A stretch of DNA of 64,000 bases from Epithemia pelagica (lineage: Eukaryota > Protista > Bacillariophyta), in contig OX337233.1 in the NCBI GenBank assembly GCA_946965045.2, positions 620,001 through 684,000 of the forward strand. Reading direction: 5' to 3'. Below are positions 32,839 to 62,000 of this stretch, one piece after another. The position numbers and the translations under genes are program-made. Position 1 is the stretch's first letter. Each line of letters opens with the position of its first letter. The notes beneath the pieces are model-generated. The model did not search any database. It was not told where the DNA came from and saw nothing but the letters and a program-made list of their open reading frames with translations.

Positions 32839-32974
32839 TTGTGGTCTAATACTTTTCATTTTTAGTTGTTCATTTTTATGGTCAAACGGCAGATTCCCAT
32901 GGTCGGGGTACATTTTTTGTTCCTTGGTTCGTACAAAAGATACTGGGGGCTACGTATGCATGTTATTCGTAGAA

Positions 32975-33016
32975 TTGTCCTCATATGAGGACAACCGCTG
33001 TCCTCATATGAGGACA
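32975..33016. repeat. Right subterminal palindromes TTGTCCTCATATGAGGACAA and TGTCCTCATATGAGGACA
   Basis: Perfect 20-bp and 18-bp palindromes. Confidence 0.9.
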
Positions 33017-33091
33017 AATCGGGGTAGAATAGACACTAGAGCCTCTGGTTGCCTCCGGAACCCAGTGAAGATCCAACCAGACATGTTCTTG

Positions 33092-33202
33092 CAAAATACG
33101 CGTAGGGGTGTGACTCGAAAATATAAAATTGTGACTATCTCATGCCTCAAGCTTAGAGGCCTTACTATCGCTAATTTTGCTCAATAGGCTAGCCATATTT
33201 TG
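33092..33202 (-). repeat. 3' LTR of element 1
   Basis: Preceded on the sense strand by the purine tract GAAGAACTGTGAGGGGAC (PPT). Confidence 0.93.
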
Positions 33203-33338
33203 GTCCCCTCACAGTTCTTCGTCTCGTAATGAAGTAACTGTGCCAATCTTCTCTTGTCCCATCTAGACCTGCTTAAAGCCCTTTCATCTTTTAGGTGCAG
33301 GACGTACCCAGACCCAACAGAGGTTGGCGGGAAACGCA

Positions 33339-36300
33339 CTAATATAGGATCATTGATGCTAACCGTGTTGTCTCTGTACCTGTTTGAATCTTAGTAAGAA
33401 TGTCAGCAAGGTTAGTCTTCGACGGTTCAAAAGCAACACGACACATGCCCGATGCAACATTCTCACGAACAAAATGATATGCGATTGAATTTGACTTCTT
33501 TTTCAGTGTTGATTCAGGGACCGACGTATTCAGTACCACAGACATGTTATTAACCCGTATATGCGCATGTCCATCCAGAGGTACGCCCATCATCCTTAAC
33601 TTATATCGAAGTCCTTTTACCATTTCAATGCCCACTTTGAGAGCCATGAATTCTGACCCAAATGTCGATGTTTCGACGCTGGTCTGTTTCTTACTGTACC
33701 AAGTTACAGGAGCTCGATTCAGATAGATTAAAACTCCAGTTCTTGAACGTCTGGTGATCAAATCCCCAGCATGATCAGAGTCGACGAAGACCGTCATCTG
33801 GACTGGATTACCCAATGGTTCTGGAGCGTCTGCTGGAATGTCCTCTTTGGCGTCTGGATAAAAACCTACCCAATCAGCAGTCAATTCTTCTCCGTGCTGA
33901 ATATATGAAGGGTCTAATACCAGTCTCGAACGGTCATGTAAGTTCAGATAAGCGAAGACATGAAGCATCGCATGAACATGACCTTCTCTTGCTCCTGCTA
34001 AGAAAGCCGCCAACATTGAAACCTCCGCAGTAATGTCGATCCTTCCCAGCTCGACCAACCATCTGAGAACACCAATCTGCTGTTGGAAAGACGATTGCCA
34101 ATCAGCATTGCAATATGGGCTCGTATCCAATTCTGGACGGTATCCTGTTGGTAGCACGCTTGGGGCTCGAGTCTTAAGACTCAAGTTTCTTTCATCCATC
34201 CAAACCTTGACATTCCGTATGGCTTCTGTTGCGTATCGCTTTGAACTTAGCGCCCAACATCTTTTAGACACGTCATTGTCAATGTCGAAAGTTTCTACTT
34301 GGTTCCCCAGATAGATCTTGGGTATTCCGATCGAATCCGGTTTCAATAAATAATGTTGGTCGATCATATTCAAGATCTCTTGTGCCTTCTGAGAGATGAC
34401 AAGGACGTCATCTATATAGATGAACACAAGTTCATAGTACTTCGATCCATCGTCCTTTGTAGAGGCCCGAAGATATACATCGGGATCTGCTCGGCACGGT
34501 CGAAACCCTAACGACTCTTGCAAAGTCGTGGAAAGGTGTTCTCTCCATGCGAAGGCACTCGTTTTAAGGCCATATAGTGCCTTAGTGATTATCGCGTACC
34601 TCCCTTCATTTTCTTTTCCAAATTCTAAGCCACATTTGGTGCACACTCTTTCGTGGCAAGGAGCGTTCAAATATGCTCCAGCGATATCAGCCGCAAGGAT
34701 ATCGATTCCATTCAGTGCTGCAAGTAAGAATCCGATTCTCACGCTCTCCCTGCTGACTACACTGGCATAGGTAGGCGTTTCTGGCTCTTGGGTACGGTGT
34801 CCCCCTGCTACATACCTCGCCTTCCTGGTAAAATCCATCTTTATGTCAAACACAATATGACATGGGATGACTTGATGGCCAGGTGGATGCGGCGCACCTT
34901 CTTCCAAAATCTTGACTGCAGGAAAGATCTTAGACATTTCGAGTTGAAGGGCTTTAGCCCAGAAGTCTGTTCCTGTTTCTTTATCGATTTACAACGCCCG
35001 TTCTACGGTCTTAGGAAGCTCAATACCGTACTTTTGCCATTTTCGCATGTACCTTGTGCTTGAGACGGCCTTGATTAGTCTTGCACGCCTCTTGAGAGTG
35101 AAATCGACCCACCAATTGAAAGCCGGTTCTTTGTCAAGCAAATTAGCCACTGCATATTCGGCTACTTCTAAAGGATACGATTCCTTCAGGTCCTTGAGCA
35201 TCTCCCACGACGTGGAACCATCTTTCCACAATATACAAAGCTGCCAACCCCTCGTCGTCTTTTTCTTATGTTCTCTCCCATTATGAAAGAACGTACCCTC
35301 TGAGATTGGTATGGCAGTTGCATCTTTTCGGTGATCCATGATCTGATCGATGAGTTTGTATTTGTTTCCCTCATCGTCTAACTGCTCGTAAATGTTCTCG
35401 GCAATCAGGTTTGCCGCATAAGACTCGACGTGGCCATCATGGAACTCTACTTCGTACAACGACGTATCCAGATACGGATTTGAAGATGACCGACCAATTG
35501 GATTACCGTCTGCATCTCTTTTCCGACGTATAACTTGACCTGGTCTCTTTGAGTCCCCTAAAGGGAGCATCACCTTGGCCGAGATTAATTTGTCGTATGC
35601 ATCCACCTTGTAATCGTCGGCCTCTGGAACTCTCGTGTCTTCTTTCTCATCGTCTTCATATGCTTCGAAGAAAGGAGTATCATTTCCTTCTTCTGCGGGA
35701 TCATCTCCTTCCTCTGGGTCAAGACCTTCGAATCGGTTCCCCAGAGCTTCCTTTAGGTCAGTATCAAACTGTTCACGTTGTGCAGTAAACGACGGATCAT
35801 GGGACTTTTCAACTGACAGGGGCCACACGGAAGTGCGATGGACAATCTTCCCTTTTCGTGTCAGTATTTTCGAACTCATTGCTTGACCAACCGATTTACT
35901 TGGTCCTAGCCACCTTCCGAGTTCCCTGTTCTCGAACCCGGGATTGGAATACCAGACCGGGTCATACCATCTGTGTTCAACTAGATGGGATATGTCTGGT
36001 GTATCACTGGTCAACGTTTTTATAGGTGGACCTTCATCAAACGGTTCAGTCGCAGAAACTGTATGGGATCGTCTCTCAGCTACCAGTTGCAAACAATGAT
36101 CCCACAATACAGCAGGGGCGTTTGTCCTTCTCATTTCCCTTCTATAAGCCCTCTTCAGTTCGCGGATGTTCGCTTCGGCTAGATTTTGGTTTGGTGTCCA
36201 AGCCTCTATGGGCTTAATACGACAACCAAACTTTTGGGCAGTCTTCTTGAATTTCCCACTCGTCAATTCTGGAGCATTATCTGGGACTACGCTATTGAAG

Positions 36301-37337
36301 ATCCCGTAGTCGTTAAAGACCTTCTCTAGAGCCGTGTGAGCATCCTTCTTGCGTTCCAACGGATAAAATTGAACCCAGCCAAACTCGGTCGCAAAAATTT
36401 GACCACAAGTATTTTGGCTCAAAGATTTTGTATCCGAAAACAGAGTATCTGTGTATACATCTGCCCGAAGCCTTCTATGCTTAAGCTGGTAAGCCGTATG
36501 CTTGAGCCTTTTACTTCCGACGCCTTGGGAAAAATCTCTTACTCCAAGTTGCGTTGTTGCCTTGAAAGTCCTTTCCGCAACTGACAAACCGATTCCCCAT
36601 CTCGAAGCTAATCCAATGGGATCTATTGTCCCCTTTCTCTTATGGCTCGTTTCGGCTACGGTTCTTGAGTTTACTCTCACCATCTTGGTCATTCTGTTGC
36701 TCAACGACCTCGAACCTTTTGTTCTGACCATGTCTTGACAAACGTCCTGTCTGAGCCTTCTCTCATCGACATCTTCTTCAGTCGAGTCATTCGGGGCCCA
36801 TTCTGGATTATCGTTGGTCATCTCAATCCTGTTCGCTGGGTCAATATTCGCTATCTCCACCCAAGACGGTTTCCTTACAGTGAAGCCACTGATTACTCCT
36901 TTCAACTCCAGAGGGATTGTCAGTGTATTTCCATTGTCGTCGTTATTGGGAACAACCAATGAATGTGATTCACTTGTCCTTTGCTCTTGCTTGATAAACT
37001 TGAGGGGCACATCATTGACGATGATACCAGCCTCTCTCATCTGATTTGGATTCAATAGGCTCTTCTCCATCATCGGAAGATGGAGCGCTTGGTGAAAGTA
37101 CAACAGGTAAGTCTCTCCTGTCTCGGGTTCATCATATGCCAACACGCCTGTGATTACGGGAGTTTCCTTTAATTTCCCAAGCTGTGTTGAAAACCCACTC
37201 ACTTCTGCCTTGTCTGTCTCATATAAAACGAGGCAATCCTTACCGAGACAACAAGTGTCAGCGTGACTGTCTAATTCGCACATAGACGTCCTAACGCTAA
37301 TGTCCCTGGAGAGTACATCTATCTCGCGGACATCTCG
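33339..37337 (-). pseudogene. pol: pol of element 1 (protease-integrase-RT-RNase H) with an in-frame TAA at 34989-34991
   Basis: ELDSHADTC protease; TDT/PDNA/LAE integrase; DIAGAYL, LYGLK and YIDD RT; DSDHAG/GSEF RNase H. ERAL*IDKETG is continuous in one frame; RNase H xDN motif reads VNN. Confidence 0.9.
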
Positions 37338-38831
37338 TCACACGGTTTCTTTCCTGCCTTTCTTTCTCTGGCTCATTATGGCGCCAATACCGAGTTCCTT
37401 GTCGTTCTCACTGGAATCGCCAGTTGTCTCTGATTTCTCATCGGTAGTCGTCGTCGTGCTTCCATCAACACCTTTTCTCTTGTTCTTACCGTTCTTAAAA
37501 TGAACAGCAGCAGCAGACCTTTTCTTTGTACTGCTGTTAACAGCGTCCCTTGCTTCTCGGACCATTTGCTGTTGTTCCTTTGTGAGTTTTATCCACTTTC
37601 TAAAGGGATAATATTTGTTGGGGTCAAAACCGTTTGATTGGTTACTCCCATTCTTCTTGTTTCCACCTTTTCCATTCTTGTTATGCTGGATAGATGAGAT
37701 TCGGGCCTTCCTTGTTGAAGCACTGTACGAGACCTTGCTGTCAAGAATCTCTGCCAAATAATTGGAAGCAACTTCAAAGTTTGCCCTGAGTGAAGGTGTA
37801 GCGAGTATGGTGTTCTTCGCGCTTTCAAGCCTTGGATCAGATACACCCAACAATAAAACTCTAACCTTCCTTTCATTACTGACCATCTCGCCAGTTGATT
37901 CGAGGTCCGTAAAGGCCCTCTGGAGCGATTCAATGTACCTCTCATATGTGTAGTTTCGTTTTGACCCGTCATAATAGGCCGATTCCAACACTTGGTCTGC
38001 TTTTGCCCTCAGTCTTGTTTGAAAGGCGTCACCAAAGTAATGACTCTTTAAGGCAATATAAGCACCTCTTCCGTCTCGACTGCGGCTAAAGGCTTGAACC
38101 CAGCCCCATCCAGGGCCATCATGGGTTATGTGGCGTATGACATCCCAAACTGCCTCTTTGTCAGCCACCGCGGTTGCTCCAGTTAGTGGCGCACGCCTGA
38201 TTAGTTCTCTCAAGTACGTTGGTGCTCCGATTCCTGGGTCCAAGTTAACCGGAGGAGCAGTTGGCATCGAGCGGGTATACGCTGCCAAAGGGATCATAGT
38301 AACTCCTCTTTTCCTCTCAAGGTAGTTGTCTAAATCTTCGAGAACGACTTGTATGTTCTCAACATTTGTGAGTTTCTCGGGAAGTTCAATCTCATTATCA
38401 TACTCATCATCCGCTTCTTTAAGACGGTAGAGTCCTTGGATTTGAGCCAATGTTGCCGTTGCCGCACTAAACTCGCGATCGACCTTATTGAGATACTGGA
38501 CGTAGTACCCAAGCATCTTCAAGCGCTTTTCCAAAACATGCCCGACCAATACTCCTGGGTTCGTAATGGTAATTGGGACTCCAGGAACTGGATTAGCAGC
38601 GTCATAGTCCGGATTAGGAACAGTTCCACCGGGTTTCCTGGCATTAGCGCAAATTTCAGCGATATCGTCTTCCTTCAGACCATTAAAATCGCCAATCGAA
38701 ACAAGGCCTTGTGCATTGAGAGCGTTACGAACTTCTTGTTGACCAATGAGAAGGGTATTCTCAAGGTAGCCATTAAGCTGAGTGAGCAGTTCTTGAGCGG
38801 TTGGAGGAGCGGGAGCAACGGGTTCGGCCAT
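37338..38831 (-). CDS. gag: gag of element 1
   Basis: 497-aa ORF upstream of and in frame with pol; basic C-terminal tail. Confidence 0.85.
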   Translation of the reverse strand: MAEPVAPAPPTAQELLTQLNGYLENTLLIGQQEVRNALNAQGLVSIGDFNGLKEDDIAEICANARKPGGTVPNPDYDAANPVPGVPITITNPGVLVGHVLEKRLKMLGYYVQYLNKVDREFSAATATLAQIQGLYRLKEADDEYDNEIELPEKLTNVENIQVVLEDLDNYLERKRGVTMIPLAAYTRSMPTAPPVNLDPGIGAPTYLRELIRRAPLTGATAVADKEAVWDVIRHITHDGPGWGWVQAFSRSRDGRGAYIALKSHYFGDAFQTRLRAKADQVLESAYYDGSKRNYTYERYIESLQRAFTDLESTGEMVSNERKVRVLLLGVSDPRLESAKNTILATPSLRANFEVASNYLAEILDSKVSYSASTRKARISSIQHNKNGKGGNKKNGSNQSNGFDPNKYYPFRKWIKLTKEQQQMVREARDAVNSSTKKRSAAAVHFKNGKNKRKGVDGSTTTTTDEKSETTGDSSENDKELGIGAIMSQRKKGRKETV

Positions 38832-39255
38832 GGTTTACTTCTTTTATCTGCGTGTAGACGGATCAATTGGGACTTTCTTGTACTCGGAAGTGAGCATTTT
38901 CTTTCAGTCACACGGTCCGGTTCTTCACTCATTTCGGGCGATTCAAAAGGTAGAAAGCGTGCACAGCTGCATCGTCGGCTCATGTTTCATTTATGAAATA
39001 ATCATGACCGCATAGCAGGCTTTGTCTTGTCAACGGCCAAGACCGGCGCGTCCGCCATTGCCCCAGATGTGCGCACTCGCAGACCACATCTGTTAGCTAG
39101 TCCGGTCCAAACCCCGTTGCAGGCCGGATATTCAACGAGACTAGCTGTACGACGTCATTAGTCGACCTTTGGGCGGATCTATATCATCGATCCAGATATT
39201 TCTCGACCTTCCCAGGCCATTGTGCCATAGCTTTTACCATAATCGCAGAGTTTCT

Positions 39256-39269
39256 TGGGTCTGATAAAC
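39256..39269 (-). other. Primer-binding site complementary to a tRNA anticodon arm (TGGGT-CTGATAA-AC; Ile-type)
   Basis: Abuts the 5' LTR; + strand has a 5-nt stem strand, a CT-GAT-AA loop and the start of the complementary 3' stem. Confidence 0.65.
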
Positions 39270-39380
39270 CAAAATACGCGTAGGGGTTTGACTCGAAAAT
39301 ATAAAATTGTGACTATCTCATGCCTCAAGCTTAGAGGCCTTACTATCGCTAATTTCGCTCAATAGGCTAGCCATATTTTG
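39270..39380 (-). repeat. 5' LTR of element 1
   Basis: 109/111 identical to 33092-33202. Confidence 0.93.
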
Positions 39381-39797
39381 CTTGTTCCAAGAGTGTTTCT
39401 ACGAATGAATGGGTCCTACTCCTACTCCGAGTAGGGGCAGTGGGCATGTCCTAGGTAGGTAGGGTAGAGCTGCGCGACTGCGTCCACAGAGAAAACCGCA
39501 TGCAGATGCAGTCGTTGGGCGCACTGCAGAATCCACACAGTTCGGGCGACTCGGAAACCTTTCGCAACTGCACCGCCGAATACACCTTATCGTAATCTAG
39601 AAGAATCATGGGATCCATATATTATATAATGTACGTAGTTTTGGGATCAATGCGCTAGGATTTGAAAGAGCACCCCCCCCCCAAAAAAACCAACGCTTCG
39701 TTGCCTCATTTTTTCGGCCAGTGTCGCTCGATTTTGTTCACCCGCGCTTTGATTGGTTGTGCTTGCTATTCAATCGTCGAGTAATAGCAATAGTATT

Positions 39798-53645: not shown

Positions 53646-54428
53646 TGTTAGAATTCTCACCGTCTATGGTGGTTAGATTCTACATCTCATCGATTCCCCA
53701 TGTCACATAGCCTCGTGCTATTGCATCATGCCCTCTAGCTTCGAGCTATGTTTCCTAGCTTCGCGCTATATCGACCTATATTTCTTCGCAAATCATGAAA
53801 AGTGAGAATAGATTGACGAACTCACTCTCAAGACTAAACTGGGTCGTGCGGTATTACAACGGACGTAAATTTGGCCGTTGCTCGGACATTATACTAACGC
53901 CCTAAGCGTACGCGCCCGAAATCATCGAGCGCGCCCAAGCGACATCCGAGCGCTGTCGGCATCTATCCGACCCAACGGTCTAAGTATCCCAAGCACGACA
54001 CACGATCACGCGAGACCATATTTCCATTCCCACAATCTCCAAATTGTCAACAAGCTGCGCGCCATGAAAACAACTATGCCAACCCAAAGCAAGAGCTGTT
54101 GACCCTGTATATGTTATCCGCCCACATATACATGTCATATACATCACATGAATCAACTCCAACTATTCCAAACCTGTTGCCGCCAAGAACCTATGACACA
54201 TGACCCTTGGCAGGACCGAACATTTCACGTAGACCTATCGTAGTAATCAACACACAATCTAACAATATCACCATTTATCACATCCTCTTTTGTGTCCCGA
54301 CTATACTTTTGATAGACTTCGACTTGCTTGCTTCTCTGACCCTGAGAAGCTTGTATCGGTTGGTGACCTACCTGATTGTCTGCTCTACCGAGCATCAATG
54401 TCCCTACGATTCAGAAAGAATTGTATCA
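53646..54428 (+). repeat. 5' LTR of element 2
   Basis: TGTTAG...TATCA, matches 61213-61995. Confidence 0.97.
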
Positions 54429-54442
54429 GATTAACAGTCTCA
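54429..54442 (+). other. Primer-binding site complementary to a tRNA-Asn(GUU) anticodon arm
   Basis: Reverse complement is TGAGA-CTGTTAA-TC: stem strand, CT-GTT-AA loop, start of the 3' stem. Confidence 0.7.
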
Positions 54443-54464
54443 AAGCTTATTTCCTTGTGGTTTC

Positions 54465-55244
54465 ATGGATACTAACGAGCTTATCACTCCTGTACGACAG
54501 ATCTATCGAGCCAAACTGCATCCCGGGCAGCCCGATACCCTGGTGCAGCAGGAGCTGGTGCCGACGCCGAAGGCAGCCAACACATCGGTCAACATCTCCG
54601 TCGACAGTTCCAACAGCAACCTATTCGAGACTCCAACCCAGCCTCACGCTCCGATCCCTGCGCCGTTGCTTCGGCCCCCGAGTCCGCCTCGTCGGCTCGT
54701 CCCTTCTCAATCCCGTCGTACCACCTGGTTGATTGCTGATCATATCAAGTACTTCCGTCAACCAACTTGTTCGACCTTCGATCCTGAGATCATCCGTGGG
54801 GAGACCCAGATCGAACGCCAGTTCCAATCGGTGACCCACATCGTCGACCAAGAAGACATTGACCGTCTGAACGACCAACTTCATCGTTCTCCGAGGCGTC
54901 GCCTCATCTTGGCCGCCCTCTCGGGCAACCCCATCCGTACTGTCCACCTCCGCTTCCTAACCTTCGAGCGCCCAACTGGATACTACAATACCATCCACGT
55001 CGTGAACGCGACGACTTGCCCTCTGCCTCCTAACGTTGTACGCCTAGATAACTACGTTGCCTACATCCACGAGGTCCATACCATCGAGGACCATCGTGCA
55101 ACTATCTTCCCTTTGCGTGCCGAGGTCGAGAACCACCTGGCTGAAGGTGATACCCCTTCTTCTGTTGCTTGTGCTGCCCCATCTGAGCCTGGAAACGACT
55201 CTGATTATTCGAAAGAGAGTGGAGATTCGGAGACCGAAGCTTAA
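54465..55244 (+). CDS. Extra 259-aa ORF upstream of gag inside element 2
   Basis: Sense-strand ORF between PBS and gag; Pro-rich N-terminus, globular-looking middle, acidic tail; no family recognised. Confidence 0.6.
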   Translation: MDTNELITPVRQIYRAKLHPGQPDTLVQQELVPTPKAANTSVNISVDSSNSNLFETPTQPHAPIPAPLLRPPSPPRRLVPSQSRRTTWLIADHIKYFRQPTCSTFDPEIIRGETQIERQFQSVTHIVDQEDIDRLNDQLHRSPRRRLILAALSGNPIRTVHLRFLTFERPTGYYNTIHVVNATTCPLPPNVVRLDNYVAYIHEVHTIEDHRATIFPLRAEVENHLAEGDTPSSVACAAPSEPGNDSDYSKESGDSETEA

Positions 55245-55564
55245 TTACTCATAGTTAACTCCCGTCCTCTCAAAACCTTTCCAAGACTTAAACTCAACGC
55301 ACATCCGGGTACCCTTGGTCGCACAACACGCCACACATTCCCGTCAAATCGCGAAAATTCGGCGAAAATTTGTTGAAACTCGGCGAAAATTTGTCGAAAT
55401 CAACGGAAATTTCCAGGAGTCGCACATCACAACACACATCTGGGTATCACATACGTGGTACATACGTGGCACACGTGGTACATCCGGGTTCACATCACAT
55501 CACACATTAAATAAACCACATCACACCGCACATTAAATAAACATCGAACCAACCAAATAACACC

Positions 55565-58500
55565 ATGGATCCTCAATCACCCAAGACACCTACGACTCCT
55601 AAGGGAGAAGATAACCAAGACAATGTCTCAGACACAGACCTATTCGACCACATCATATTTACTGTCTGCCAATTCTTTACCAAAGAAAGGGCCGACTACT
55701 TAATGAAGTGGATGAAATACCATGGTTTTGAGAACATTACCCATGTTATCTCGTATATGCAAACTAATACCGAGGAATCCATGAAGGAACTGACACAGTA
55801 CAAGGTCAACAAACAGACACATGATCTACAAGGCCCCACAAGACAGCAGATCAAGCTCTTGGCTTATTGGGCCATATACAAGACCAATGAAATTCAAGAC
55901 GAGCTATCCAATAGCGACTGGATGAACCTAACGAGGAAAGAGTTCAACACTTGGAGGATCAACACAGATTTCTCTAAGGGACCACCTAGTCAAGTCCCAG
56001 TCTCGCCAATGAAGTCACCGTCATCTGTGAAATCTGTCAGCACAGTTACTGCCGCATCCCAATCTCAACAAGACCTTACAGCATTCAGAAAGGGAACTAA
56101 GCGCGACGCAACTGCATATGAGGTATTCAAGGATGAACGATACTACGATTCATTCTGGCGTGTATTCAAGACTACAGCTAAGGCTCAAGGCCTATCCAAC
56201 GTTCTGAATTTCAAATACACACCACCCCATGATGATGAGTATGCCGAAGAACTTTTTCAAGAGCAACAAGTATTTCTTTACTCTGTTCTTGTCCGTAGCA
56301 TTCAGACTGACCAAGGTCGAGCCTATGTACGTGAACATGAACATGATGAAGATGCGCGTGCCGTATTGCAGAAGTTACATTCTTTGCATACCGAATCCGA
56401 CCTAGCAAAGCGAGAGGTCCTCCGTTTAACCAACTACATTTCCAATCTACGTCTTGACGACACATGGCGCGGAACAACACGTCAATTTCTTCTACACTTT
56501 CAAGAGCAGCTACGTTTGCTAGACAATCTAGTGACATTGTCTGATCGCATCCCTGATCATACCAGGATGACCTTCCTCATGCAAGCTGTAGAAAAGGTAC
56601 CTGATCTCCGCCGAGTCAAGATCTTGGATAATGTGGTGAACACCAAATCCGGTGCAAAATCCCTTTGCTATCAATCATACTTCCGTCTCCTTCTAGACGC
56701 AGCTTATGACCATGATCAAGCACCCCAGTCATCTGTTCATAGTCGCCGTCGACATGTCAAACAACATGAATCACTATATGGCCAAGATACAGATGCTGAC
56801 ATAACCTCACAAGATGATATGGAGTATCATGTCCACAACACCACAGCGACATCTGAATCTCCATCCTCTTCGTCCAAGGTTAGTCTACCGCGTGACCTAT
56901 GGTTCAAACTTTCTGAAGAAGATCGCAAGTTGATCATTGAGTATAACAAGATGATTCAAGCACCTTCATCAACAACACCGAGGAAAGTGCAAACACATGC
57001 CCTCGACATTGATCCGGAACCTGATCCTGACCCCAACCAAGTTGCATCTGATGACGACTCACCTGGCGTAGTCCCTGAGCATCCAGATGATTCAGATCCG
57101 GTTACACAATTTATCAACCAAGCCATGACGACTGATATCAATCACCCGGCAACTGACCTGACTAGTGTTCTTTCTAATGCCAAGTCCAAGACGAGCAAGA
57201 AGGTTACTTTCAAAACCAACATGCATAAACAAGCAGGACATGTTCCACGCTATCTGTTTTCCAGGAAATCTACTTTACCAGGAAATCAATTGATTGACCG
57301 TGGTGCTAATGGAGGACTTGCTGGTTCTGACATGCGCATCCTTTCTAAGACTGGCCGCCATATCACTATTGTGGGTATTGATAACCATGAACTTACTGGA
57401 CTTCCTGTCGTCACATGTGCCGCAAAGTTTGAGACCAATGACGGACCTATTGTCGGCATCTTCAATGAATATGCTTATTATGGAAAGGGCTTATCTATCC
57501 ATGCTCCTGGTCAATTCGAGCATTTCGGACTTGCTGTTGATGAACGATCTGTTAAAGTTGATGGTAAACAACGCATCACTACACTTGATGGTCGTGCCAT
57601 ACCCCTTCACATCAAGGATGGGTTAGCCTACATCCACTCTTTGGGTATCCCCAGCAACGATGACATGGATACCTTACCTCAGATCATCTTCACGTCACCC
57701 GACACATGGGATCCTGGTGTTCTGGACCATTCGTATTCTCCCACACCCTCTGACAATGATCCTGATTGGAAACACGTCAAGACTGATGGTAGTATGTCGA
57801 ACCATCCATATGACAACTATGGGGAGTACACTGATCGTGTTGTTTGTAACCTCAATCTCCTTTTGGATCTCCCATACGATCATGGACCTGACGACGCACC
57901 CTTCTTTTCTATCTATGCTGACGCAGAAGGTAATGATCCTACACTTCATGCCTCTGTCCACCGTCGTTACCAGGAAGCGTATGACTGGAAGAAGTTCCGT
58001 CCATTCTTTGGTTGGCAATATGAAGATGTTATTGCCGATACGTTCAAGCACACTACACGTAATGGTAGCATTACTTTTGACCACGACACCCTCAAGAAAC
58101 ATTTCAAGGCTCGCAATTTGCTACTGACTCGGTTTTCTCCGACACCCCTGCTGTTGACCATGGCGGTAAAGTCGCACAAATCTTTGTTGGTCGAGATACT
58201 CTGGTTACTGATATCTATGGGATCAAGTCAACCAAACAGTTTATCAATACACTTCAGGATAACATCCGGTTTCGTGGTGCCATGGAGACTCTTATCAGTG
58301 ATGGTGGTTCATCTCTCATCTCTCAAAAGGTCAAAGACATTCTTCGCACTTTGCTTATTGGGGAGTATCGATCTGAACCTTATCATCAACACCAGAATAA
58401 GGCTGAAAACCGTTACCAGACCGTTAAACGTATGACCAACGCTCTCATGAATGCCACTGGTTGCCCTGCCAACACCTGGCTTCTTTGCCTTGAGTATGTC

Positions 58501-61218
58501 TGTGACTTATTGAACCATACGTCATCACCCACCCATTCCGGTCGCACTCCTCTTGAGGCTCTCTCCGGACGCCCACCCGACATTACTCATCTCTTGTTCT
58601 TTCCTTTCTGGGATGAGGTTTACTACCGTGTCGACCCCGCTGAACCCAATTCTGGTTCATATCCATCTTCTTCTGATGAGAAACTTGGCCACTGGGTTGG
58701 TTTTGCTCACAACGTTGGTGATTCTTTTACTTGGAAGATTCTCACCCAGGATAACCAGATCATCTACCGTTCTGCCGTTCGCCGTGTTGAATCCACTACA
58801 CCTAACCTACGTGTGGATCGACCTTCAGGGGAGGATTCGTCTGAGAAGGATGACAATGATAAGCAAGCTGACACTGTCTTCATTCGCAGTGATAGTGAAG
58901 ATCCATCCAAACCAATGCCCACGATCGATTTTGACGACATGATAGGACGCACATTCCTATGCGACACAGAAGAAAATGGGGAGCGACACCGTGCACGTGT
59001 CATCAAACGAGTCATTGATCTTAATGAAGAAGCAACGAAACAGGAAGAACGTGTCAAGTACATCTACCGAAAGACAAATTCTGATGTTGATGAGATGATA
59101 TCCTATAATCAACTCATGGAGTATATCGAACGAGATAACCAAGCTCAAACCTCTGGAGATAATCTTTTCAGGTTCAGGGATGTCATTGCCCATCAAGGCC
59201 CACTGAACACAACTGATCCAGATTACAAGGGGAGCAAATATAATTTGCTTGTTGATTGGGAAACTGGGGAGACTACCTATGAACCTTTATCACTCATCGC
59301 CAATGATGATCCGATCACTGTAGCAATTTATGGAAAGAAACATGGTTTACTCAACGAACCTGGATGGAAGCATTTGAAACGTTATGTCAAAACAAGCAAA
59401 CCTCTCATTCGAGCAGCCAAACAGTCAAGGATTAAACAAGTTCACCATTCCGTCAAGTATAAGTTTGGATTTCAAGTACCACGCAATTATGAGGAAGCTG
59501 TCGCTCTTGATAAACAACATGGCAACACAAAGTGGCAGGATGCAACAGAATTAGAATTGTCACAGATCCAGTCCTACAAGACATTCAAGGATTTTGGGAA
59601 AGCCATCTTCATTAAAGGGAAAGTATCCAATGCACCTGAAGGATATCATAAGATACGTGTACATCTTGTCTTTGACGTAAAACATGATGGACGACATAAA
59701 GCAAGACTTGTCGCAGATGGACATCTCACAAAAGAACCTGTTGAGACAATCTATTCAGAAGTTGTTTCCATTCGCAACCTCCGCATTGCCTTATTCCTGG
59801 GTACTTTGAATGACTTGGAAATATGGGGAGCAGATATTGGAAATGCATATCTGGAAGCCTTGACAGGGGAGAAAATTTTCATTGTCGCAGGACCTGAATT
59901 CAAGGAATTAGAAGGTCACATCCTGATTATATACAAGGCACTTTATGGATTGAAGTCATCAGGCGCACGCTGGCATGATGTCTTATTCGATGTTTTGACA
60001 GACATGGGATTTTCACCAAGCAAAGCAGATCCGGATATCTGGATGAGGAAAGCACCTGGAGAAGACTGTTACGAATACATTGCCGTATACGTTGATGACT
60101 TAGCCATTATTTCTACTGATCCTGGGAATATCTGCAAGATCCTGAAGGAGAAATACAACTTCAAACTCAAAGGAGATGGACCTATTGATTTCCATTTGGG
60201 ATGTTGTTACACCAAGGATTCTGATGGAACATTAGTAGCAGATCCAAGACGCTACATTGGTAAGATGATGGACACTTTCGAACGAATCTTCAAGGAGAAA
60301 CCCAAGAAAGCCAAAACACCTCTTATTGGTGGAGACCATCCTGAATTGGATGATTCTGAGCTCCTTGATGAAGAAGGTACTAGCCATTTCCAAACTCTGA
60401 TTGGACAACTCCAATGGGTGATCACTATTGGTCGTTTCGACGTCTTCACCGCTACAATGACGCTATCACGCTTTCGTGCTGCTCCGAGGAAAGGACATCT
60501 TGATAGAGCCAAGCGTATCTATGGATACCTTGCACATCTCCCAGAAGGCGCAATCAGATTTAGGATTGGAGAGCCTGATTATTCAAGTCTTCCTACCCAA
60601 GAATTTGATTGGACTCGCACTGTCTATTCGAATGCAAGTGAACGTATTCCTGAAGACTGCCCAACACCTCTTGGCCGCTATGTTACCACAACTCATTATG
60701 TTGATGCCAATCTCATGCATGACATAGTCACTGGTAAATCCGTCACTGCTGTTCTACATTTGTTGAACGGAACACCTATTGACTGGTACAGCAAGAGACA
60801 GAGCACGGTGGAAACTGCTACCTATGGATCCGAGTTTGTGGCTGCAAGGACAGCAATAGATCAGATTACAGAATTACGACATTCTCTCCGCTACCTTGGA
60901 GTACCTATCCGAGAGCGAAGTTACATGTACGGAGATAACAGATCTGTTGTGCTCAATGCAACCGTTCCTCATTCCATACTATCCAAGAGACACCATCTTC
61001 TGTCATACCACCGAGTTCGTGAAGCCATCGCAGCAAAGTATGTTGCATTCTACTGGAAAGATGGAAAGACCAACCCTGCCGATATCCTTAGCAAACATTG
61101 GGATTTCGTATCTATTTGGCCCATGCTCAAGCCATTGTTGTTTTGGAAAGGAGAAGTTCAAGATCTCAACAAATCCAATGATGACAAGGCTGAAACGACG
61201 AGTTGTGGGGAGTGTTAG
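55565..61218 (+). pseudogene. gag-pol of element 2 with a frameshift at ~58117 in the integrase N-terminus
   Basis: LIDRGANGG protease; -1 frame after KARN continues ATDSVFSDTP...ISDGG...AENRY (integrase); DIGNAYL, LYGLKSSG, YVDD (RT); YVDAN/GSEF/GDN (RNase H). Confidence 0.9.
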
Positions 61219-61995
61219 AATTCTCACCGTCTATGGTGGTTAGATTCTACATCTCATCGATTCCCCATGTCACATAGCCTCGTGCTATCGCATCATGCCC
61301 TCTAGCTTCGAGCTATGTTTCCTAGCTTCGCGCTATATCGACCTATATTTCTTCGCAAATCATGAAAAGTGAGAATAGATTGACGAACTCACTCTCAAGA
61401 CTAAACTGGGTCGTGCGGTATTACAACGGACGTAAATTTGGCCGTTGCTCGGACATTATACTAACGCCCTAAGCGTACGCGCCCGAAATCATCGAGCGCG
61501 CCCAAGCGACATCCGAGCGCTGTCGGCATCTATCCGACCCAACGGTCTAAGTATCCCAAGCACGACACACGATCACGCGAGACCATATTTCCATTCCCAC
61601 AATCTCCAAATTGTCAACAAGCTGCGCGCCATGAAAACAACTATGCCAACCCAAAGCAAGAGCTGTTGACCCTGTATATGTTATCCGCCCACATATACAT
61701 GTCATATACATCACATGAATCAACTCCAACTATTCCAAACCTGTTGCCGCCAAGAACCTATGACACATGACCCTTGGCAGGACCGAACATTTCACGTAGA
61801 CCTATCGTAGTAATCAACACACAATCTAACAATATCACCATTTATCACATCCTCTTTTGTGTCCCGACTATCCTTCTGATAGACTTCGACTTGCTTGCTT
61901 CTCTGACCCTGAGAAGCTTGTATCGGTTGGTGACCTACCTGATTGTCTGCTCTACCGAGCATCAATGTCCCTACGATTCAGAAAGAATTGTATCA
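61213..61995 (+). repeat. 3' LTR of element 2
   Basis: Matches 53646-54428. Confidence 0.97.
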
Positions 61996-62000
61996 GGAAC

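Follow-up and report, generated by a model that had tools for sequence, protein, structure and literature searches.

A Ty1/Copia-type retrotransposon family of the diatom Epithemia pelagica with CA...TG termini and 4-bp target-site duplications, likely part of a large CoDi3/CoDi4-like clade

The window analysed here, a stretch of 64,000 nucleotides of the Epithemia pelagica genome (GCA_946965045.2, contig OX337233.1, positions 620,001 to 684,000), carries on its minus strand an LTR retrotransposon whose parts are the following (positions are those of the window; TSD, target-site duplication; PBS, primer-binding site):

33092-39380, minus: whole element, LTR to LTR, 6289 bp, in Ty1/Copia order
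33088..33091, no strand: TSD copy adjoining the 3' LTR, CTTG on the plus strand, CAAG in the element sense
33092..33202, minus: 3' LTR, 111 nt, sense reading CAAAATATGG...CGCGTATTTTG
33203..33210, minus: PPT GAGGGGAC, flush against the 3' LTR
33339..34937, minus: second piece of pol (RT and RNase H), Pfam RVT_2 at about 34305-34886
34989..34991, minus: in-frame TAA in the IN/RT boundary region, splitting pol of the window copy
34992..37283, minus: first piece of pol, with a protease-like motif (LDSHADTC), a three-domain integrase and a chromo-like region
about 35139-35351, minus: chromo-like region, within the first pol piece
about 35724-36620, minus: three-domain integrase, without HHCC
36447-36449, 36279-36281 and 36174-36176, minus: catalytic D279, D335 and E370 of the integrase triad, respectively
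37338..37340, minus: one in-frame TGA separating gag from pol, followed by C (TGA-C), kept in relatives
37341..38831, minus: gag ORF, 497 aa
39256..39269, minus: PBS GTTTATCAGACCCA, flush against the 5' LTR, complement of tRNA-Ile(AAU) positions 27-40
39270..39380, minus: 5' LTR, 111 nt
39381..39384, no strand: TSD copy adjoining the 5' LTR, CTTG on the plus strand

The two LTRs of the window copy are identical at 109 of 111 positions, with two differing bases, and their identity is confined to the segment CAAAATA...TATTTTG, the termini of which form a perfect 7-nt terminal inverted repeat. An earlier note on this DNA had described 111-bp LTRs with CA...TG termini and a 7-bp terminal inverted repeat, a PPT and a PBS abutting the LTR ends, and a CTTG duplication on both flanks. 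This description was recovered entirely: the repeats at 33092-33202 and 39270-39380 agree, GAGGGGAC adjoins the 3' LTR and GTTTATCAGACCCA the 5' LTR on the minus strand, and CTTG is read at 33088-33091 and again at 39381-39384.

The two pieces of pol share strand and frame, the first one (34992-37283) containing the protease-like motif and a D,D35E integrase, and the second one (33339-34937) an RVT_2 domain detected with an E-value of 3.3e-18 (66.6 bits for a cut-off of 31.6). The order PR-IN-RT-RNase H, with the integrase upstream of RT, and the presence of RVT_2 assign the element, as judged from its sequence, to the Ty1/Copia superfamily (Pseudoviridae). The Copia gene order and the very short LTRs pointed out in the earlier note are confirmed, and they are common to a clade. 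Two traits typical of Ty1/Copia, which do not define it, TG...CA ends and a 5-bp TSD, are absent, with CA...TG ends and a 4-bp TSD in 11 out of 11 complete copies of the family. The TAA at 34989..34991 is private to the window copy, P0001 (98% identical) being open at this place over a frame of 1314 aa; since this codon falls between the integrase and RT, the window copy is defective. The in-frame TGA between gag and pol is conserved among relatives and is likely a readthrough site. The 497-aa gag product has no Pfam match, no CCHC knuckle was seen in it, and its 52 relatives include none that is named. The relatives of pol number more than 2000 and are mostly unnamed metagenome proteins; among the matches listed, the named homologs come only from diatoms (Mayamaea, Fragilaria and Cylindrotheca), with no protein of Phaeodactylum or Thalassiosira.

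The earlier note had proposed to search for the LTR in the genome and to align independent insertions. This gave 27 LTR matches in E. pelagica, including 11 complete pairs, and all 11 complete copies share the CA...TG ends with a perfect 4-bp TSD directly adjoining them (CAAG, TTGA, AAAT, GTTG, AAAC, AAAC, CTTT, GGCG, ATGC, CGGA and ATAC), for an expected random 4-mer match of 1/256 per copy. The LTR pairs of these copies are 98-100% identical, six of them being strictly identical. The family of LTR retrotransposons to which the window element belongs is young, multi-copy and recently active.

The integrase core displays the complete D,D35E triad (D279, D335 and E370). Pfam rve alone remains below threshold for this region (E 0.011); a profile of the region searched against the PDB matches retroviral integrase cores only (PFV, HTLV and MMTV), and the AF2 model of the integrase (pLDDT 77.5) compared to the PDB with Foldseek retrieves the PFV, RSV and HIV integrases with E-values between 1e-9 and 1e-10 across about 280 columns. 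Upstream of the core, a 29-sequence consensus presents no conserved H/C of an HHCC zinc-binding N-terminal domain, and the AF2 model places a short helical unit where this domain would sit. The integrase is of retroviral D,D35E type, very divergent and devoid of the HHCC finger. C-terminal to it, the chromo-like region (AF2 model, pLDDT 84) has no Pfam match, and it is matched best in the PDB, always weakly with E-values of at least 0.025, by chromo and chromoshadow domains: Swi6 (TMt 0.76, rmsd 2.8), Rhino, CHD1/4 and cpSRP43. The conserved CA-3' joining end is not kept, the 3' ends being TG or CG in this family and in many sister families, and CA, TA or GA in other relatives of the clade.

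Complementarity of the PBS extends over positions 27-40 in the tRNA-Ile(IAU) anticodon arm, with a C opposite A34 (inosine), and the nuclear tRNA-Ile(AAT) genes of the genome carry the arm TGGGT-CTAATAA-ACCCA. In L066 and L068 it co-varies with other tRNA-Ile stems, its start always facing position 40. The PBS is internal to the tRNA and does not correspond to the 3' CCA end, and no conserved TGG is seen at its start across relatives. This match to positions 27-40 points to half-tRNA priming; from the complementarity we infer both the half-primer and the pairing through inosine. Counting the last G of the LTR as part of the PBS was rejected, as the tRNA stem of L068 puts a G opposite and its LTR is still G-ended.

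A 4-bp TSD was also retrieved in seven related families, including elements of Mayamaea and Fragilaria:

L029: ends CA-TG, TSD TTTG
L030: ends CG-CG, TSD GCGG
L028 (Mayamaea): ends CA-TG, TSD ACCA, with adjacent 169-bp satellite units as empty sites
L065 (Fragilaria): ends TG-GA, TSD AAGT
L068: ends CG-CG, TSD ATCT
L069: ends TG-CA, TSD AGAC
L070: ends CA-CG, TSD AGGT

For the Fragilaria element, an alternative parse as TG...TG with a 5-bp TSD is also possible. The LTRs of the clade members examined measure 110-330 nt, and the PPT GAGGGGAC is flush with the 3' LTR in the members examined, the tract being found in L029, L030, L065, L066, L068 and L070. In each member examined, a PBS complementary to tRNA-Ile positions 27-40 adjoins the 5' LTR, and the TSD is of 4 bp. 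Over the clade, the LTR ends follow the pattern 5'-YR...YR-3', with T or C as first base and A or G as last (CA-TG, CG-CG, CG-TG, CA-CG, TG-CA and TG-GA), and the TG-CA and TG-GA members are nested among the C...G members in the integrase tree. The E. pelagica genome contains at least 12 LTR families sharing the PBS and having C(A/G)...(T/C)G ends. At about 250 sites of this genome, the base preceding the PBS is A in about 162 cases (mostly CA), G in about 90 and T in one, the A-ended elements being known from pattern listings and L069. The metagenome contig L066/L067 has one LTR in each period of a tandem or circularly permuted arrangement and is uninformative on cDNA end junctions. The earlier note had deduced an integrase joining TG-3' ends with a 4-bp stagger. 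The non-CA ends and the 4-bp TSD are real, heritable and clade-wide; a strict reversal of TG/CA is rejected as too narrow a description, because CG-CG, CG-TG, CA-CG, TG-CA or TG-GA ends occur in relatives that share the PPT, PBS and 4-bp TSD.

The clade most resembles the diatom elements CoDi3/CoDi4, a placement made by size, LTR length, TSD and host, not by a tree. For CoDi3/CoDi4 of Phaeodactylum and Thalassiosira, Tables S10-S11 of Filloramo et al. 2021 (PMC8147415) give 4-bp TSDs, LTRs of 112-300 nt and the LTR ends TATA, TTCG, TACA and TGCA; the element Blackbeard is recorded with a TSD TTCC and a 163-bp LTR (PMC2806351, 2009). As far as these tables and records extend, CoDi3/CoDi4 and the window clade have in common the diatom host, separate gag and pol ORFs, a size of 6.3-7.2 kb, within the 6.3-7.5 kb expected of CoDi3/CoDi4, LTRs as short as 112-163 nt, consistent 4-bp TSDs and signs of recent activity, and several CoDi families likewise lack TG/CA ends. 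Neither CA...TG nor CG...CG nor mixed C/G ends appear among those tabulated there for Phaeodactylum or Thalassiosira, and the available parts of PMC2806351 and PMC8147415 make no mention for CoDi of the putative tRNA-Ile half-primer PBS, the GAGGGGAC PPT or the gag/pol UGA. The possibly undescribed Copia lineage evoked in the earlier note is doubtful because 4-bp TSDs, LTRs of 112-300 nt and TATA, TTCG or TACA ends are already tabulated; with such TSDs and odd ends on record, CA...TG appears as a new end state on an already described type of element. It is unlikely that the C...G-ended elements constitute a Copia lineage apart from the CoDi groups, whose integrase would have truly changed its end specificity. 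Such a separation would agree with the absence of CA-TG or CG-CG ends from the published tables available, with the barely detectable rve domain, and with the scarcity of gag relatives and the anonymity of most pol relatives. Against it stand the nesting of TG-CA and TG-GA members among the C...G ones, with the PPT, PBS and TSD shared, and the characteristics of CoDi4, which in the tables also combines 4-bp TSDs, LTRs down to 112 nt, a length of 6.5-6.8 kb and variable ends.

We consider it likely that this Ty1/Copia-type family, organized as gag-UGA-PR-IN-RT-RH, belongs to a large CoDi3/CoDi4-like diatom clade and relies on half-tRNA priming, blunt cDNA and a G-joining integrase acting with a 4-bp stagger. 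Reverse transcription would be primed, in a hemivirus-like manner, by the 5' half of a tRNA-Ile cut after nucleotide 40. The linear cDNA would probably be blunt, with the same ends as the integrated element, as in Ty1, since both the PPT and the PBS adjoin the LTRs. The D,D35E integrase without HHCC would then join the terminal 3'-purine OH, a G in the window family, to target phosphates 4 bp apart, and seems to read A/T-rich subterminal bases (CRAGAAA...TTTYG) instead of a fixed CA.

The inner junctions often read GGGG-AC/C...G/GT-TTATC (slashes at the LTR limits), which would also suit two extra cDNA bases trimmed by the integrase. The cDNA ends would in this case be 5'-AC-C...G-GT-3', with GT cut off each 3' end and the context G^GT replacing the retroviral CA^NN. 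The AC closing GAGGGGAC and the GT opening the PBS, which are reverse complements of each other, occur inside the junctions of the window family, L029, L030 and the Fragilaria element, and they correspond to the dinucleotides that HIV-1 loses from its ACTG...CAGT ends. We nevertheless hold this 3' processing to be rather improbable: the symmetry is broken in L068 (AC vs GC), in the Mayamaea element (AG vs GT) and in L066, the PPT and PBS flush with the LTRs form a Ty1-like blunt arrangement, and the G/T following the LTR is already constrained by the primer, because it is complementary to tRNA positions 40/39. As for the odd ends being an artefact, due to an eroded or recombinant copy or to misplaced LTR boundaries masking TG...CA and a 5-bp TSD, nothing was found in its favour and it is refuted by the identical parse of the 11 copies and seven further families and by the intact satellite units around the Mayamaea insertion, which as empty sites show exactly ACCA duplicated.

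A broader proposal can be offered only tentatively: throughout a widespread diatom Copia clade, the integrase may have dropped both the near-universal CA-3' requirement and HHCC, accepting any 5'-YR...YR-3' end, G as readily as A, with a fixed 4-bp stagger, and the C...G state may be ancestral. Few features of retroviral and LTR-retrotransposon integration are as conserved as the CA-3' cDNA end. If the proposal were true, LTR finders demanding TG/CA or a few T-initial motifs would miss about one third of the clade elements or misplace their boundaries. G-3' ends concern about 90 of the roughly 250 tRNA-Ile-primed elements of the E. pelagica genome, which pipelines restricted to TG/CA would probably overlook or delimit wrongly, biasing diatom transposable element counts and insertion dating. 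Closely related integrases act on A-3' ends in some members and on G-3' ends in others while primer, PPT and the 4-bp stagger stay the same, so that the clade also represents a convenient comparative system for the integrase residues reading the ends.

Within the window, a second element (53646-61996), bounded by TG...CA ends, with a 784-nt LTR and GGAAC as its 5-bp TSD, is canonical as the earlier note had stated; as an internal control it is not unrelated, as its pol is 30% identical to that of the window family over about 1000 residues. Among known systems, Drosophila copia and yeast Ty5 carry TG...CA termini and make TSDs of 5 bp. Like these hemivirus-type Pseudoviridae, which a short tRNA segment primes (ICTV, PMC8515867), the window family has a PBS pairing with an internal part of the tRNA, the anticodon arm. 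The likeness extends to the putative primer, whose end would fall within the 3' side of the anticodon stem; unlike in hemiviruses, it would be tRNA-Ile(IAU), with a C opposite the inosine, instead of the initiator Met tRNA. With yeast Ty1, the family shares a PBS and a PPT flush with the LTRs and cDNA ends that probably do not need 3' processing. Ty1 differs from it in having CA-3' ends, 5-bp TSDs, an integrase with an HHCC N-terminus and a pol expressed through +1 frameshifting. The gypsy element makes 4-bp TSDs. The integrases of the gypsy/ZAM errantiviruses and of plant non-canonical LTR retrotransposons act, like those of the window clade, on non-TG...CA ends, which are AGTTA...TAATT/TAACT in the ZAM clade (PMC3601003; PMC5659011). 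Unlike the window clade, errantiviruses belong to the Ty3/gypsy superfamily and the plant families are Copia elements keeping T at the first base; a 5' C combined with a 3' G is reported for neither of them.

The Copia-type element of the window is bounded by two direct repeats with CA...TG ends, each adjoined by a short duplication:

33092-33202 and 39270-39380, minus-strand element: direct repeats (LTRs), 111 nt each
33088-33091 and 39381-39384, both flanks: target-site duplication (TSD) CAAG (CTTG on the plus strand)

The LTRs read CAAAATATGG...CGCGTATTTTG in sense and match each other at 109 of their 111 positions, with GAACTGTGAGGGGAC directly 5' of the 3' LTR and GTTTATCAGACCCAAG directly 3' of the 5' LTR on the sense strand. 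All the features described in the earlier note (111-nt repeats, CA...TG ends, adjoining polypurine tract (PPT) and primer-binding site (PBS), CTTG flanks) are present. A search of the same genome (60.5 Mb, 23 contigs) with the LTR, as that note had proposed, returned 27 matches forming 11 complete pairs, and CAAAATA...TATTTTG ends with a perfect adjoining 4-bp TSD were found in 11/11, which rules out a damaged single copy as the cause of the odd ends. Identical ends are kept in sub-families with LTRs of 121-122 nt and in others just 84-86% identical to the window LTR. The LTR pairs of the family are 98-100% identical, six of the 11 fully so, pointing to its recent transposition. A near-perfect 22-nt inverted repeat (GAATTGTCCTCATATGAGGACA / TGTCCTCATATGAGGACAAATC; window 32972-33020), about 70 nt outside the 3' LTR, lies at the edge of a neighbouring piggyBac-like element.

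More than 2000 relatives of the pol protein were found, mostly metagenome proteins of 1300-1400 aa; the named ones among the matches listed are diatoms only (Mayamaea, Fragilaria and Cylindrotheca). Seven related elements were compared at the DNA level.

Ends, LTR length and TSD of the seven related elements
L029, public assembly (likely same species): CA-TG, 133 nt, TTTG
L030, public assembly (likely same species): CG-CG, 194 nt, GCGG
L028, Mayamaea pseudoterrestris: CA-TG, 217 nt, ACCA
L065, Fragilaria crotonensis: TG-GA, 252 nt, AAGT
L068, public assembly: CG-CG, 111 nt, ATCT
L069, public assembly (likely same species): TG-CA, 174 nt, AGAC
L070, public assembly: CA-CG, 331 nt, AGGT

Together with the 11 window-family copies, a 4-bp TSD is present in 18/18 elements, the Fragilaria element also allowing a TG-TG parse with a 5-bp TSD. 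In Mayamaea the element lies within an extended run of 169-bp satellite units (BROI01000010.1, L028 1-1857 and 9387-13894), and the adjacent units, taken as empty sites, establish that exactly ACCA was duplicated; this location may hint at heterochromatin targeting. A further 29 PBS loci of the same genome comprise at least 12 LTR families, with 5' ends CAAGAAA or CGAGAAA and 3' ends TTTG, TTCG or CTTG by copy-to-copy comparison, including non-palindromic combinations such as CG...TG. When the last base is left unfixed, the base preceding the PBS in this genome is A (about 162), G (about 90), T (1) or C (0), most of the A-preceded sites following ...CA and some following ...TA or ...GA. From these counts and the varied end pairs of the relatives, the clade ends are best described as 5'-YR...YR-3'. 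The CA...TG termini, previously presented as a reversal of the usual TG/CA, are thus real but not a special reversal, being one state among CG-CG, CG-TG, CA-CG, TG-CA and TG-GA. In a midpoint-rooted tree of the integrase (IN) region (9 sequences), the members with T...A ends fall in a single subclade, nested among those with C...G ends.

Ordered blocks are common to LTRs of different families (related loci L031-L060; window 33092-33202), namely CRAGAAAnGG(T)CGCG, TAGCGA, the palindrome CCTCTAGGTTAGAGG, TAATAGTCACTCTTTT and CATGACCG, and could be the signals for promoter, initiator and terminator function, compressed into about 110 nt. About 60 nt upstream of the LTR start are identical in L031 and L033, two copies of a single family (G000:C1, near 402 kb and 532 kb), which suggests segmental duplication or another repeat as the insertion site. 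The sequence of two contigs from sediment and other metagenomes (L066, L067) repeats about every 6394 nt, in tandem or circularly permuted form, with a single LTR in each period; this could come from a tandem array, from a 1-LTR circle or from wrap-around in the assembly.

The PBS is complementary to tRNA-Ile positions 27-40 and places a C against A34, as would be expected with inosine at that position. The corresponding anticodon arm, TGGGT-CTAATAA-ACCCA, occurs in two nuclear tRNA-Ile(AAT) genes, and the reverse complement of the PBS plus the last LTR base has about 90 genomic occurrences vs 6 for the control. A tRNA-Ile PBS directly follows the 5' LTR in 7/7 relatives, and the PPT GAGGGGAC precedes the 3' LTR in six of them, Mayamaea having AAGGGGAG. 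The PBS of relatives from other sources co-varies with a different tRNA-Ile stem (GCTTATCAGGCGTGG in L068, GTTATCAGCACCA in L066), both still starting opposite position 40. By its complementarity, the window-family PBS has the half-tRNA arrangement of hemivirus-like priming (PMC8515867).

What the sequences show is a PPT and a PBS that adjoin the LTRs, a first PBS base pairing with tRNA position 40, and a TSD of 4 bp. Minus-strand synthesis would be primed by the 5' half of tRNA-Ile and, because this primer would end at nucleotide 40, the last base of the LTR would be the end of U5; the first base of the LTR would be set by plus-strand priming after GAGGGGAC. The cDNA would be blunt, as is that of Ty1, and the integrase would join the purine at its 3' termini with a stagger of 4 bp. 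Trimming of two extra bases (AC...GT) from the cDNA ends by the integrase is compatible with the junctions of several families but not with those of L068, L066 and Mayamaea L028, and is unlikely compared with direct joining of blunt ends.

Three ORFs, all in one frame, and two in-frame stops were delineated in the window element:

37341-38831, minus: gag ORF, 497 aa
37338-37340, minus: in-frame TGA between gag and pol
34992-37283, minus: first pol piece, 764 aa, beginning with a protease-like LDSHADTC motif
34989-34991, minus: in-frame TAA between IN and RT, private to this copy
33339-34937, minus: second pol piece, 532 aa, RVT_2 match at 3e-18

A Pfam search with the gag returned no match. 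The first pol piece also holds YTD...PDNAPE...NLAE, the D,D35E triad (D279, D335, E370), which with the protease motif and the RVT_2 match of the second piece indicates the order PR-IN-RT-RH (RH, RNase H), that of Copia. P0001, a 98%-identical pol protein (1314 aa, public assembly), is open across the site of the TAA, and owing to this private stop the window copy is probably non-autonomous, even though its LTRs are 98% identical. A single in-frame TGA, mostly followed by C, splits gag and pol in the window copy, L029 (4965), L030 (4824), L066 (1834) and L068 (3956), and in L066 and L028 the called pol ATG comes downstream of the protease motif; pol is therefore most likely made by conserved UGA readthrough, a mode of Gag-Pol expression unusual among Copia-type elements.

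Pfam rve is barely detectable on the window-family pol (E 0.011). A profile of 29 homologs matched in the PDB solely the retroviral catalytic cores of PFV, HTLV/STLV and MMTV (E about 1e-3), and the integrase AlphaFold model (pLDDT 77.5) matches PFV, RSV, HIV and MMTV intasome integrases over ~280 columns (E 1e-9 to 1e-10). The consensus of the 29 homologs upstream of the core contains no conserved His or Cys, and in the model a short helical unit stands in place of the usual HHCC finger. Between IN and RT, a conserved region (window about 35139-35351; P0001 residues about 645-715; model pLDDT 84), also present in element 2, the second LTR retrotransposon of the window, had no match in a Pfam search; its best PDB matches are chromo/chromoshadow domains (Swi6, Rhino, CHD1/4, cpSRP43), all weak (E >= 0.025), which makes it a possible chromatin-targeting module of this Copia-order pol.

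Element 2 is canonical, as the earlier note had stated:

53646-61996: element 2, 8351 bp, LTR 784 nt (TGTTAG...GTATCA), TG...CA ends, 5-bp TSD GGAAC

Its pol, split by a frame change near 58282-58435, is 30% identical to the window-family pol over about 1000 residues. The sequence after its 5' LTR (GATTAACAGTCTC) looks by eye complementary to the tRNA-Asn(GUU) anticodon arm; if this holds, element 2 looks like another half-tRNA-primed element.

The integrase clade does have a non-CA end and a stagger of 4 bp, as first interpreted, but 4-bp TSDs, short LTRs and non-canonical ends are already recorded for the diatom groups CoDi3/4. Maumus et al. 2009 (PMC2806351) give LTRs of 153-844 bp for CoDi groups, an absence of TG/CA ends in CoDi3.2, 4.2 and 4.3, and an LTR of 163 bp with TSD TTCC for Blackbeard. 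Tables S10-S11 of Filloramo et al. 2021 (PMC8147415) list 4-bp TSDs at every CoDi3 and nearly every CoDi4 locus, CoDi4 LTRs of 112-300 nt, CoDi3/CoDi4 end motifs TGCA, TATA, TTCG, TACA or TGTA, and mostly 5-bp TSDs with TGCA ends in CoDi1, 2, 5 and 6. The apparently new features are the C...G terminal state and how often it occurs, a 5'-YR...YR-3' rule for the ends, their connection with the tRNA-Ile half-primer and GAGGGGAC PPT, and an integrase without HHCC. On structure, not on phylogeny, the window clade most resembles CoDi3/4, and the window element and element 2 mirror the published contrast between CoDi3/4 and CoDi1/2.
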